A stretch of DNA of 64,000 nucleotides from Oikopleura dioica (GCA_907165135.1 OU015568.1:3720001-3784000), one strand, 5' to 3'. Positions 56,589-62,698 are shown, numbered from the stretch's first letter. A program made the numbers and translations. Notes: generated by a model from the letters alone, not told the origin.

Positions 56589-59238
56589 ATGTTCGACTTA
56601 AAAATTTTATATTTCCTCTTTGGTTTCTTTTGCATGCACCAATTTAATTATATTTTTGGAACTGGCGATGCAGCTGTGAAATTTTTCGGCAGAGAAAATA
56701 AATTTGAGAAGATAGACGAATACGTAGAGCCCTGTCCGACAGAGTTGCCTGTAGAATTAAGAGAAGAAGAAACGCCAGAAGATGAAAAGGAAAGATTTTA
56801 AATGACATTTCACAAGAATATTTTTTCGGTAAAACGGATGAGAATCACGTGGCGAGCGCATGATCTAATGCATAACATTTTCTGATGTCAAATGCTCTCA
56901 ACAGTTAGGGTTAGGGTTTACACTAGAAAATCTCAAAAAAGGTCGTTGAAACAGCAGTTAACCTCAGCGACAAATTACAAAAATATGTCAAGGAAAAAAC
57001 GTATATTGAAAATCCGAAGAAAAAAAGCACTTATCTTCACATACCAAGGTTAGTCATTGAATTTTCTCATGTGACATGTCTATTCGGGTTAGGGTTAGGG
57101 TTAGATTTGGGCAAGAGCAACTTTGTAAGAAAAAATTTGAAATCTTTGAAAAGAAACCTGATAAAGTCGCCGCCCTCAAAGAAAAACTCGACAAATATGT
57201 CCAAGAAAAAAAAGATAGAGAAAATGCCAAGGCCGCAAAAAAGGCAAAGGCGTCAAGAACTTACGAACACATTCCTAGAAAGCCGGAAATCGGCAAGAAA
57301 ATCAGTCCGACGAATCCACCCGAGCTTCAGAAAAAGATCGATGAAGCTCTGGCGAAGAAACCGAAGACTCTCGATCCTCTGATTGTTTCAGAACACGCGC
57401 TGAAAAGATCGTCAACGGTGAACATTGCTTCAAGCATAATGCAAGCTCTTGATGTGAGAAATACGAAGATATACCCGGAGAGAAGGCTGGTTTCGCATGT
57501 TTCAAGCTGTTCTTGTAAATCGAAGACGATGAAAGTTTGGGACTTCGATGAAATTCTAGAAGGTAATTCGAATTGAAAAAAATTAAGTCCTTGATGAATT
57601 TATTTCTAGGTGAAACGAAAAGAAAACAAATCCGAAACAAGCAGTATCAAAATTATCTTCAAGACAACTACTTTGAAACTCATGCTCCTCCTCTTCTCCG
57701 GGGCCAGCCGAATATCCCTCTAGAATACGTCTCTTTTGGACTTCAAACTGAGCCGTTTTCGTCTTTTATCCTACCGCTGAAAATTCATCTTGATGAAAAT
57801 GAAATGGTCACAATTAATATTGCTTGCTCGGTAAGCCCAAATATAGATTACTCTTTTCAGTAAAGTCTGTATTTTAGCTTGGAACAGTCACAAACAGCGG
57901 TACCAAAGAAAGCGTCGGAAAATTCAACAAAACTCCTCGCACCTACACCCCTCGTGTTTTCGACGCTCGGCGAATGACCGACATCTGCTACTTCAGAGTA
58001 ACGAGACTCGCAACATCTGAGAAATTCGTGGCAAGCTTCCCAGTTGAGATTCGACGGATCAACTTGCCATGGCTCGCGCCGAGGACGGGAAATGAGTTCA
58101 AAGACAAAGTTACAGTTGTTGCGAAGAGCTTCATGAGATATGCATGTCTCGAAAGATTTTTGGATAGTCTTTTGGTGAGTCGAGAATTTAGTTATTACTA
58201 ATAACTTATTAGTAATAACTTATTACTTATCATTACGAATAATTCAAATTGGGTTATCATTAGGGTTAAGTTTTCTGACATCTTTATTTTGAATTCTGAT
58301 TGGCCGAGTGGGAAGATTCGGATATCTGATTGGGCTTAAAATTTGACCATAATTTTGGTCAAAAATCATAATTTTTTTTTCTCAATTCAACTTTCTTTAT
58401 CAAATTTTTCTTCAGAAATACTACCCCGGAGTGGAAGTCATCATTGCTGACGACTCACCCACCGAAGTTTACAAAGAAATCGACACAAAAAAATACCCAA
58501 CTGTTCGTCAATACCAAATGCCTCCCCATAGCGGCTGGTTCGCTGGACGAGGCCTTGCAATTTCGCAAGTCAAGACTGAGTTTTTCCTTTGGATGGATGA
58601 TGATTTTGTTGTCGAGAAAAATACGTCGTTGGATTATCTTCTGGAAGTGATTGAAAGCACGGGCTATGATTTGGTGGCGGGAACGACGACGAATGCTGAT
58701 GAAGGTTGGGGAAAATATAACAACTTTGATATCCAAAGGTAATTGGCAATTACTAATTGCGCTTCCTCGTTTTCTTCCTTGATTTCATCGCGGTTTTTAG
58801 AACAGAAAAGGGTTTCTGCTACGCTCGACGAGAAACTGATCACCTTCCGATTCCCGGCTATCCAGGTTGCATGGCCATGGATCTCGTGAGGAACTTCTTC
58901 ATCGCTAGAACTGCTACAGCTGGAAAAGTTCGAATGGACCCGCATTTTATCACGACTGGACACAAAGAATTCTTCATTGATTCTATTGGAAAATTGAGAA
59001 TCGCCGGGTAAGTCAATAAATCAACGCCAAGAATGACTATTTTTTTTGAAGCTGCTCGGATGTCGTTATAACCCACGATCCACAAGGCTGCGACGGTCGA
59101 ACCGAGGAATATGCCCAGTACCGCTTTCCAGAACGAACTCCCGAGTTAGAAGAAGAATACGAAGAGCGCGTAACGCGACTCTGGCATCATAGAAGTTTCA
59201 TCAAGTGCTACGAAGAACATTACCCAGTTTATCAATAG
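56589..59238 (+). CDS. Beta-1,4-N-acetylgalactosaminyltransferase (B4GALNT1/2-like, GT12)
   Basis: KVTVVAKSFMRYACLERFLDSL; VEVIIADDS; GWFAGRGLAISQVKTEFFLWMDDDFVV; DLVRNFFIART; HKEFFID..GKLRI. Confidence 0.85.
56905..57104 (+). repeat. Two short interstitial (TTAGGG)n tracts in adjacent introns
   Basis: (TTAGGG)2 at 56905-56916 and GGG(TTAGGG)2TTAG at 57086-57104. Confidence 0.75.
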
Positions 59239-59409
59239 CCATCCTTTATTATTTTAATTTCTAATTTATTACGGCCATTTATTTTGATAAATAAATGCCT
59301 TTTTAGTCAATTGTCAATACTAGAAACAAAATTTCCTTTCCGCAAACACAGTTTTTTTGCTATTGAAACAGTTAATCATTTATTTCTCTCGAATAAATCA
59401 AAAATGCAG

Positions 59410-62120
59410 TCAATTGTATGCGTATTCTTCGTCATTTGTTGCATCGATGACATCTCTTTTTGACTCAATGAAGTGATTCGGAATGCCGTAAAAGGTTTGG
59501 CCCATTTTGGACAGGAACATTTCAGCAGCTAAAAACTAATGATGCTTTCAGCGAAGATAAAAATCATGATAAATTAAGGACCCCCCCTCAATAATTTTCG
59601 AAAAATCTATTTTCCGGATTGGAAAATTTTGACCCCGGAAATGGATTCTACGGGTCAAAAAACAATTTTGAGGCTTCATTTTTTGGGTGTCTATCTCGAC
59701 TCTATCCCCTCGAAATCGCGTTTGAAAATTTGACTTTTTGACGAAAAATGACGAAAAAGTCTCAATTTTGCTAAAATTTCAGATTTTAATTAGGGGGCCC
59801 AAAGAAGTATTTATGATGAATTAAACTTCCAGGGACATTCATAAGCCAAAATATGGCTGTTTTGAAATTTTCGATTTTTTGAGGAAAATTGTTGACGGGG
59901 GAGGGTCCTTAAAAGTGACTGCGTTTTTATTAGTTGAGAAAACTTTTTCCTGAAGTTATCGACCAAGGAATAGATTTAATCTTATTAATAATAATCATAA
60001 GGTCATCTGAGGGTTTGTTTAACAATTTCGTTCATGCGCTTCAATTATCATTTTGTCAGATAGCCGATGTGTTTATGTTTTATGTTCGTGTCTAAAATTA
60101 CTTTATAACCCCCTTTTATTAATAATTTCAGGCGCTTTTATCTGAATCATTTTTATAATTACCCAAAACCGCGTTTGCTAACTCTTCCTCCTCCGTTAAC
60201 GCAAAAGCAAAAACAAAAAAAAGCGAAAAAATCTTCATTTCAATTCGTTCAAATCGTCTTTACAGTACAATAAACACGTCTTACTGTCGTCTTTTATCCG
60301 TTGATTATTGATTCTTCTGTTCGCTCAAAATATCTTGAATAAAAGATCAGAGCTTCGTTATTTATTCGCCATAATAAGCAAATCACCACAATTTTGTAAA
60401 AAAGCTTTTTTGACGTCAAAAATAATTATTTTTTCACAAAAAGAAATAATTAAAAATCAATACACTTGTTTATTTTGTTTTATTCTAAACACGTAACAGT
60501 TGTTAACGCTTGAACGCATATTGCGCAGATTTCTGCGCAGAGCCCCTTTAAGGGGGTGGTGGTCGAGAAATTTTTTTTCGGCTTTTTAAAATTTTGATAT
60601 TATTTTTAGATTCCTTGATAAAAAAGGAACATTTTTGGTCTCTAGCTTCTTTTGATTGGACCAACTTTATTGAAGAATATTTTCGATTTTAGGCTATAAA
60701 ATCGCCATTTTCGGGAATTTTGAAACGCTTTTTTCGTACTAAAGCAAATTTAAAATTGATTTTCTTTTGCGATGTTATGTTTTTTGATCATATTTTATCT
60801 ATAAAAATCAAAAAAAATTACGATTATCTTGATGTTTTCGAAAATTTCATTGAAAAATGAGTGAAAATGATGATTTTTCAGAAATTAACATGTTTTCATT
60901 CAATTACTATTTTCTTTGTTAACAAGGTGAACTTTCTAAAACTAAGCCGCCCACACGCTAAAGGGTCTAAAATTTCCTCTCGATAAGTTTTATTTGGAAA
61001 AAAATGATAAGGGGATAGAGTTTTTAAGGTCAAGAGATGGGTCCACTTTGAAGAAATTTTTCACTATTTTTTCGAAAAAATATTTTTTTCAAACATAGCC
61101 GCCCACATAAATTGGACCCTTTTCAACTTATTTTCAATTAGAGAAAAAAAAATTTCTTTGAAAAAAATTGAGTTTTTTAGGTTGAAAAAAGTCTTAGTCT
61201 CGACCACCACCCCCTTAAAGCTCGATATCTCATACTTTACTTGACTAAAATTTTAAATGAACCCCCACTTTAGGAACTCTTTTTCGATGACGAATCCGAA
61301 TCTGGCATCGAAAAAAATTTTTGACTTCAGGATAAAAAGTTGGCTTCAGAACGAAAATTTCCGATTTTTTCGAATAATGTTTTGTAAGCATTTTAACAGT
61401 TCTGCATTGATTTTTCCGTCGATAAAAATATTTTTTCGACGCTTTATCGCATTTCTACATCGAATCAAATAGTAATTTCATCATTAATATCTATTTTGTA
61501 CAATTGTTCTTGAGATCAATGAAATAGAAAAAAATGGAAAAAACTAAGTCATTTTCGGGTTACTTCAAAAATCACTATTTTTAGCGAGGTTCAGGTTTCG
61601 GTTAGGATTTTAAACTATAATAAGCTTGTTCGCAAGCGTCTGAACTTCATTTTGGTAGCTTTGATTTTTTCAAATCTCGACCACAATCGTCGCTAGAGCG
61701 CTCTAAAGGTGCTGCGCAGAAATCTGCGCAATATGCGTTCAGCAGGAAAAAAATTTCGTGCGTTCATGCGTTAATTGTATACTCAAAAGTTCGCATACAG
61801 GTTCTTGTTTTCTTCAGGCCAAGGCTCGACAACCTGTTTTAAAAACCTGAGTCAGGGCTCTGTTTAAGCGTTTTCATAACCCTGACTCAGGTTTCCAACA
61901 CAGGTTGCCGAGCCCAGCTTCAGGCCAACCGTTTCGTTTGACATGGTTTTGACTGCCATAGAAAGTATATCCCATCCTCTCCAAAAACTCCTCAGCTTCT
62001 TAAAATGATTCTTTTATTCGAAATTTCAACAATTTTATTTTTACCTGACACAGCCATTGCTATTTTTTCCTCTTCAGTGAAGGCGGAAACAAATGCAAGA
62101 AACAACGAAAAAAACATCAT
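59410..62120 (-). CDS. 87-aa secreted prepropeptide with two homologous peptide repeats and KR sites (3 exons), not in ORF track
   Basis: Exons 62045-62120, 61930-61998, 59410-59528; both introns GT-AG phase 1. MMFFSLFLAFVSA-FTEEEKIAMAVSEAEEFLERMGYTFYGSQNHV-KR-NAAEMFLSKMGQTFYGIPNHFIES-KR-DVIDATNDEEYAYN*; AATAAA at 59379-59384. Confidence 0.72.
59578..59908. mobile_element. 331-bp TTAA-flanked MITE with GG termini (Kolobok-like)
   Basis: TTAA 59574-59577, GGACCCCCCCTCAATAATTTTC...GAAAATTGTTGACGGGGGAGGGTCC, TTAA 59909-59912. Confidence 0.8.
60507..61770. mobile_element. Outer TTAA-flanked inverted-repeat element hosting a nested insertion
   Basis: TTAA 60503-60506 and 61771-61774; ends CGCTTGAACGC/GCGTTCATGCG; perfect 29-bp inverted repeat at 60512-60540 and 61712-61740. 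Confidence 0.75.
60552..61214. mobile_element. 663-bp nested MITE with TTAA TSD and 17-bp TIR (Kolobok-like)
   Basis: TTAA 60548-60551, GGGGGTGGTGGTCGAGA...TCTCGACCACCACCCCC, TTAA 61215-61218. Confidence 0.88.
61820..61917. mobile_element. 98-bp MITE, CTGGGCTCGG family, copy 3, perfect 8-bp TSD
   Basis: CAAGGCTCGACAACCTG...CAGGTTGCCGAGCCCAG flanked by CTTCAGGC at 61812-61819 and 61918-61925. Confidence 0.9.
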
Positions 62121-62698
62121 AGTAATTGAAATTATTAAAATTATTTGCAGGAGACGAGTTTTTATACAGTTTCTGTATTACAGGGTTAATTTGATTTACG
62201 AGCGTGAATAAACAGATTAATATTGGCAAATTTGTCGATGAAGTGCAAAATCATGGTCTGCTCTTGCACAATTATTTGGAATTAGGCACAATTGAACGCG
62301 ACTCAAGCACTTATTCGGTTGCTGTTTGCCCAACAGCCAAAAACAAAGTCCTTTATTTTGCCTTTCTGTGATGTCTAAATATGATCCAACTAATTGGTAA
62401 CTTGAACTTAATAGAGTTCTCAAGAATTTGAGAAATAACATAAAAAGTATTGACGGTTCCTTGATATGCATAAAAACAGCTGTTTGCTGACACAGCTGAT
62501 TCAGTTATTTAAAAATCATTATAGCCAGTCCTGATCTTCCGAGTAACCGCATAATGAAAATCATAAAATGATGGTACAAAAACGCACCAACTTCCCAAAC
62601 GAAAAAAAAGATCAGACTTAAAAAAAATGATTGATGAATAATGATGAAAAATAAAGAGAAAAGAAAAAATCAAGACTTCAAGAGAAAAAAAACAATTA

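Follow-up and report, generated by a model that had tools for sequence, protein, structure and literature searches.

A probable tandem pair of two-exon genes for a family of small secreted proteins in the larvacean Oikopleura dioica

Gene predictors routinely overlook genes for small secreted peptides. Larvaceans are the sister group of all other tunicates and have a radically compacted genome, and to our knowledge their peptide-signalling repertoire is almost unknown. Here we analyse positions 59,410 to 62,120 of a 64,000-nucleotide stretch of Oikopleura dioica DNA (GCA_907165135.1 OU015568.1:3720001-3784000; hereafter the window). A previous inspection of this DNA (the sequence-only reading) had proposed that the interval holds a hidden three-exon precursor carrying two copies of a secreted peptide, so that the locus raises the question of whether its two motif-bearing exons belong to one gene or to separate genes. 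We conclude, with a probability of roughly 80-90%, that they belong to two neighbouring tandem two-exon paralogous genes, A (62120-61874, minus strand) and B (60238-59410, minus strand), and not to one three-exon gene. Both genes belong to a conserved family of small secreted proteins found so far only in Oikopleura-type larvacean DNA. The O. dioica OKI2018_I69 assembly comprises 64.3 Mbp in 19 scaffolds with a gene density of one per 3.7 kb, a median intron length of 49 bp and gene models obtained by AUGUSTUS with RNA-sequencing hints (PMC8008620). Word-index protein searches in length windows of 27-86 and 52-164 aa yielded no protein record for A or B; therefore, both appear unannotated, and they seem to be absent from the published O. 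dioica annotation. In this respect, the earlier proposal is supported insofar as it described a hidden gene that is spliced and encodes a small secreted product bearing a conserved motif and a KR pair.

One gene or two

Much of the exon description in the sequence-only reading proved accurate. On the minus strand, to which all features of A and B are assigned, an exon encoding a signal-like peptide (62120-62045) is followed by a 46-nt GT-AG phase-1 intron (62044-61999). Two motif exons were also found as described: the exon starting at 61998 encodes AEEFLERMGYTFYG... and then KR, and that starting at 59528 encodes AEMFLSKMGQTFYG..., KR, an acidic tail and a stop. The AATAAA that had been noted after this stop is present at 59379-59384, although it lies 25 nt, and not 26 nt, downstream. 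The arithmetic of the proposed 87-aa joined frame is likewise correct because the GT at 61929 and the AG at 59529 are both present and compatible in phase. However, a second ATG exon (60238-60163) lies inside the proposed 2401-nt intron, with a phase-1 GT donor and a TATA-like box nearby. The protein encoded by this exon is 56% identical to that of exon 1 of A and has the same hydrophobic block and acidic T-EEE..A.AV stretch, and the exon ends in the same kind of phase-1 GT donor. Because each of the two motif copies comes with a separate signal exon, promoter-like box, stop and poly(A) signal, the whole gene was duplicated, and not a single exon as had been suggested. A DNA comparison of locus A with locus B gave no alignment outside the exons; the duplication is old, and only the exons can still be aligned.

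Gene A begins with a TATA-like box, TATAAAA (62160-62166), 46 nt upstream of the ATG. Exon 1 (62045-62120) encodes a signal peptide with a 15-residue uncharged block and a candidate cleavage site VSA/F (the slash marks the cut), then TEEEK.A.AV, and ends in phase 1. The intron (61999-62044, GTAAAA...TTTTAAG) has the same position and phase as those of B and of the relatives C, L045, L056 and L072 described below, and it needs to be spliced because its length is not a multiple of 3 and read-through reaches a stop. In its present state, exon 2 (61874-61998) encodes AE.FL..MG.TFYG, SQNHV, KR and a tail that extends into a miniature inverted-repeat transposable element (MITE), with the stop TGA at 61876-61874; without the splice proposed for the three-exon gene, this exon simply continues past 61929 to its stop. 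Gene B has a TATA-like box, GATAAAAG (60292-60298), an exon 1 (60163-60238) that encodes a signal peptide (AFA/L) and TEEEELANAVL and ends in phase 1 at the donor GTAATT, and a 634-nt intron (59529-60162) that holds a 339-nt MITE. Its exon 2 (59410-59528) encodes AE.FL..MG.TFYG, IPNHFIES, KR and a 14-residue tail ending in EYAYN, with the stop TGA at 59412-59410.

That exon 1 of B is a coding exon is supported by an 832-bp ENA metagenome contig, L045, which holds a complete orthologue of B: the box in the form TATAAAAG, exon 1, a GTGAGT donor, a 352-nt intron, exon 2 ending in ...EYAYN, the stop and the AATAAA. Exon 1 differs from that of B by seven base changes, six synonymous and one non-synonymous, and the 15-codon core differs by four changes, all synonymous, giving 10 synonymous changes and 1 non-synonymous change over both. 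The alignable flanks are 75-77% identical (the region upstream, with the TATA-like box, aligns at 74.6%), and most of the intron cannot be aligned. From this substitution pattern it follows that exon 1 of B is a selected coding exon and not part of an intron.

A single gene with exons 62120-62045, 61998-61930 and 59528-59410 and a 2401-nt intron, yielding the 87-residue two-copy precursor as its main product or as a minor read-through isoform, would therefore have to contain within that intron a conserved coding exon that is under purifying selection and has a TATA-like box of its own. The intron would further hold the 14-residue tail and stop of A, two AATAAA signals and three transposons, and its length would be ∼49 times the published median (PMC8008620). 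Although both required splice sites exist, both junctions are in phase 1, the joined frame is open, and cross-splicing between tandem duplicates of identical intron phase is possible in principle within a read-through transcript, the donor at 61929 reads G/GTTGGC, which is weak compared with the exon-1 donors of the family, all of which read GTAA, GTGA or GTAT. Further, in the other family genes and transcripts (7/7), a single motif follows directly after the signal exon. Each gene thus has one motif, the second copy at the locus having a signal exon of its own, and the multi-copy arrangement of a prohormone was not found. We consider the three-exon gene very improbable; at most, its long splice might occur in a rare read-through isoform.

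Two points weigh against the two-gene model. The splicing of A and B themselves would follow from homology with the relatives, and public proteins contained no candidate orthologue of A, which could thus be lineage-specific or decaying. Paralogy, the splice position and purifying selection are nevertheless established, and the relatives provide transcript-type support, as set out in the next section.

The family and its relatives

As defined here, the family consists of A, B, the third paralogue C of the same genome, its allele L044, L045, the contig L046 with its protein P0004, and two further genomic copies, L056 and L072; relatives were sought exon by exon, the spliced state being represented only by the database proteins P0002 and P0004. 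The motif A-E-x-F-L-x-x-M-G-x-T-F-Y-G stands at the start of exon 2 and is invariant in all eight sequences. Hence, the motif conservation in relatives that the sequence-only reading had asked for was found, and the part AE.FL..MG.TFYG of its consensus AExFLx[RK]MGxTFYGxxNH stands, but the consensus was too long, as NH is not conserved. Each of the seven genomic copies (A, B, L045, C, L044, L056 and L072) has a signal-type exon with the ending ...A.(A/V)V.x and then, one codon ahead of AE, a GT-AG intron in phase 1 (42-634 nt), and a [TG]ATAAA[AG] box precedes the ATG by 46-98 nt in every copy of the family. Neither NH nor KR nor an amidation signal is shared by the whole family.

Gene C was located by degenerate DNA patterns, which were needed because genome protein searches with single exon-2 peptides did not recover even the A/B paralogy. 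The MGxTFYG pattern matched the 64-Mb genome three times, compared with no match in the reversed control, and the patterns MGxTFYG and AExFLxxMG together with a profile search pointed to exactly three genomic sites, A, B and C (reversed controls, 0 and 1). Two genomic matches to a TFYG..NH pattern (L027 and L028) were dismissed as chance because they have neither the AE.FL context nor an upstream signal exon. In C, which lies 2.4 Mb upstream, a single signal exon is separated from a single core exon, starting with AERFLTNMGRTFYG, by a 42-nt intron that is in phase 1 and has the same position. The published annotation splices C at precisely this junction: its protein P0002 (Oidioi.mRNA.OKI2018_I69.PAR.g8775.t1), an unnamed hypothetical protein with no Pfam domain, is identical to C. 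P0002 resembles A and B in its signal exon, phase-1 intron position and invariant core but differs in having no KR after the core and in having a long helical tail with a further exon (125 aa in total); its exon 2 is ∼40-46% identical to theirs. L044 is an allele of C with 94-95% identity. Codon-by-codon reading of exon 2 gave seven synonymous changes and one non-synonymous change between the two, and the intron is 3 times more diverged, with a 3-nt indel.

The 3' end of C shows several further features. The annotated model bypasses an in-frame stop through the donor AA/GTAGTT, a ∼1.1-kb intron and a further exon (L022:1621-2766), and an AATAAA lies 17 nt past that stop. An insertion of ∼750 bp is present within this region in L022 and absent from the L044 allele. 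Because the peptide encoded by exon 3 of P0002, IAQNIRKTIDQ, resembles the segment IAKRIRTSIDN in the continuous tail of L072, short and long isoforms of C may both exist. The intron of C (L022:1436-1477; 42 nt, compared with 45 nt in the L044 allele) is in frame and stop-free, and prokaryote-style gene callers therefore read through it, giving P0001; its retention would add 14-15 residues with no truncation.

An exhaustive profile search recovered P0004, encoded on contig L046 (JGI sample 3300018997), which consists of a signal peptide, TEDDELAQAVR, D, AEMFLANMGRTFYG, INRRNLPFPES and a stop, and which is continuous across the intron position. The opposite strand of L046 (304-1956) encodes an uninterrupted 551-residue family-2 glycosyltransferase (PF00535). 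The best genome match to this enzyme is the gene that converges on B in the window (57256-59235, plus strand), which has six exon blocks in different frames and five short introns, none of which is present in L046. Since introns are missing at 6/6 positions, L046 is best read as assembled spliced RNA from a more distant Oikopleura-type species, and, because it has the same convergent glycosyltransferase neighbour, P0004 is identified as the positional orthologue of B, in which the only core exon is joined directly to a signal exon and not to a further peptide exon. Two genomic copies, L056 of the P0004 type and L072 of the C type, are interrupted at this point: L056 has a 68-nt GT-AG intron at the junction that is uninterrupted in P0004, and L072 has a 73-nt intron there. 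The gap between the convergent stops is 174 nt in the window and 145 nt in L046. The convergent arrangement of B and the glycosyltransferase gene is thus kept in a relative with no more than 60-87% protein identity, which is notable because the genomes of O. dioica lineages are reported to be scrambled relative to one another (PMC11067885).

Searches beyond the family returned no known relative, in line with the statement of the sequence-only reading that no known family can be assigned. Pfam gave no match for six exon translations (E ≤ 10), P0002 or P0004, and the ESM Atlas gave no feature neighbour; its structural neighbours (RecF, HD-GYP and others) were dismissed as generic helices because the Atlas model has a predicted local distance difference test score (pLDDT) of only 0.48. 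The best match of a PDB profile search (AcrIIC4, E = 0.34) was rejected, leaving no PDB relative. In an exhaustive hidden Markov model search of 1.84 billion representatives, the credible matches were larvacean-type sequences only. The others were bacterial BspA leucine-rich repeat (LRR)/DUF285 proteins, a Salmonella SET-domain protein (P0006) and a 4094-aa protein; P0006 and P0007 were set aside on length and on the names in the P0006 cluster, and P0005 and P0008 were rejected as short-motif convergence and not homologous. In these last two, which are of the BspA type, the repeat unit VT.M..MFYGCS scores against the LTNMGRTFYG core with E = 2e-9 summed over repeats, but the 12-residue match lies inside a repeated LRR β-strand unit of a 600-750-aa protein with no signal-plus-acidic-helix context; such repeat-summed values are misleadingly good against a short eukaryotic peptide profile. 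A first scan of JGI data with AE[RME]FL[TSE][NKR]MG gave 69 raw matches, none of which was confirmed, and 23 of the 25 matches of a second scan were rejected as bacterial membrane proteins (FFSFMGLTFYG) or noise. In the literature, we found no paper on Oikopleura peptide precursors or on the AE.FL..MG.TFYG motif.

Mobile elements and the state of gene A

The locus contains three transposon insertions in 2.7 kb, one of them within a coding exon. This last is a palindromic 95-nt MITE with 40-nt arms (61917-61823, minus strand) in the coding tail of A, bordered by the direct repeat TTGGCCTGAAG (61928-61918 and 61822-61812, minus strand). A genome search with it gave 90 matches besides the query at 72-91% identity (40 of 655 first-look candidates were scored), and at least one other copy (L037) has a clean 8-bp target duplication. 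Beyond the MITE, in the same frame, lies the pre-insertion end of A, WPEENKNLYANF and a stop (61783-61821). With the MITE discounted, the tail of A after KR has 14 residues, the length and register of that in B, and the tails of A, B and L045 share N7, Y11 and A12.

An element of 1231 bp (60511-61741, strand unassigned), whose terminal inverted repeats of 30 nt are perfect, lies 41 nt past the ancestral stop of A, and within it is nested a 675-bp element (60546-61220) with perfect 23-nt inverted repeats, CTTTAAGGGGGTGGTGGTCGAGA. The inner element is present in many copies, 38 of 39 other matches starting at the inner repeat with 85-98% identity (40 of 111 first-look candidates scored), and the terminus of the outer element is spanned by only one other scored copy. 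Two AATAAA within 60469-60484 (minus strand) lie ∼67 nt past the ancestral stop with the 1231-bp element discounted and are likely the original poly(A) signals of A, their use being predicted. The third insertion, in the intron of B, is a high-copy 339-nt MITE (59574-59912) with the termini TTAAGGACCCCCCC and GGGAGGGTCCTTAA. Among 320 first-look candidates, 39 copies besides the query were scored and are nearly all full length; because these are 84-87% identical, they suggest a single old burst.

These insertions bear on whether A is now a decaying duplicate, functionally a pseudogene, leaving B alone active. The last nine residues of its tail have been replaced by MITE-derived sequence, the 1231-bp nested element stands between its stop and the likely poly(A) signals, and the lack of an orthologue in public proteins points the same way. 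However, the ATG, signal peptide, splice sites, core motif and KR of A are all intact and its TATAAAA box is present. The MITE, moreover, sits downstream of KR, and the putative mature peptide of A would therefore be unchanged. A GT at 61929 and an AG at 61812 could also remove the MITE in frame. We consider it unlikely, if by no means negligible, that A is decaying.

The possible MITE-removing splice merits description in itself. Its donor would be the GT at 61929, which overlaps the beginning of the first target-site copy, and its acceptor the AG at 61813-61812, with which the second copy ends; splicing of 61929-61812 would excise 118 nt (the MITE and both duplications) in frame, lose only GWPE and restore ...ENKNLYANF; both sites are weak. 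Introns derived from MITEs are known from another larvacean, Fritillaria borealis (see the review PMC11282704).

Possible processing and function of the products

A rule-based inspection supports a cleavable signal peptide in the predicted products: a 15-residue uncharged N-terminal block is followed by small residues at -3/-1, with VSA/F, AFA/L and SSA/G as candidate sites. We posit that signal peptidase would cut after VSA in A or AFA in B and that a proprotein convertase would then cut at KR. The products would be an acidic, largely helical peptide of about 32-35 residues, ending a few residues past TFYG, and a second, 14-residue Tyr-containing acidic tail peptide, and the role of an extracellular ligand would fall to the N-terminal domain. 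A has later acquired the MITE in its tail and the 1.2-kb nested element in its 3' region, with signal, core and KR intact.

That the family gives rise to a processed, prohormone-like signalling peptide in this manner is a tentative proposal. A, B and the diverged orthologue of B all retain KR despite changes in neighbouring residues; P0004 ends in ...FPES, about where a cut at the KR of B would leave ...FIES; and P-domain convertase matches are present in the genome. These observations fit processing without proving it, and the predicted mature size of 31-37 residues and the helical propensity suit peptide ligands. The competing explanation accepts the same two genes but holds that their products are unprocessed small secreted proteins with another extracellular role exerted through the N-terminal helical domain, for example as a component of the house, mucus or gut lumen or in defence, the KR being incidental. 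We regard this, too, as a real possibility that falls short of an even chance.

Several observations weigh against processing or favour such another role. The sequence-only reading had reported that an amidation Gly is lacking, and this was confirmed; basic sites are also lacking between signal peptide and core, and in A, B and L045 KR is confined to the C-terminal side. The C-type members keep the N-terminal domain yet have long helical tails (P0002, 125 aa; L072, ∼100 aa) and no dibasic site near the core. In P0004, the basic pair is RR and is shifted to lie directly after YGIN. Moreover, the EYAYN end of the B tail is conserved, and the tail is therefore not a mere spacer. Finally, the AlphaFold2 model of P0002 made with the family alignment, in which a single helix runs across the exon junction and ends at TFYG, is of low confidence (pLDDT 56.7) and was used only as a hint of helicity.

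The resemblances to tachykinin and galanin that had been pointed out earlier found no support: only the aromatic-Gly dipeptide (FYG) is common to the family and tachykinins (PF02202), whose FxGLM-Gly-basic feature is absent from all translations, and only a loose G-Y...G...N-H spacing is common to it and galanin (PF01296), whose N-terminal GWTLNSAGYLLGP directly after the cleavage site is absent; neither family was matched in Pfam at E ≤ 10. Lineage-specific tunicate precursors (e.g. Ciona-specific neuropeptides, PMC6475428) and prohormones share with A and B a signal peptide, small size, a short conserved core and a dibasic site with a tail, and the Ciona-specific precursors are likewise orphan sequences confined to one tunicate lineage. 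In contrast to prohormones, the present family has one copy per precursor, no amidation Gly, no basic site N-terminal of the core and no sequence similarity to them. It is a rather doubtful suggestion that the family represents a previously unrecognised larvacean peptide hormone or neuropeptide acting as a non-amidated helical ligand of about 31-37 residues that signal peptidase and a KR-directed convertase would release. Because the tandem duplicates share intron phase, occasional read-through yielding a two-copy precursor is conceivable under this suggestion; if true, such a precursor would be an early step towards a multi-copy prohormone.

Overall, the locus illustrates that transposon insertions can disguise two compact genes as one long-intron gene, which calls for caution when exons are chained by eye. 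A conserved, selected and lineage-restricted family with a fixed 14-residue signature is a concrete candidate for functional work.

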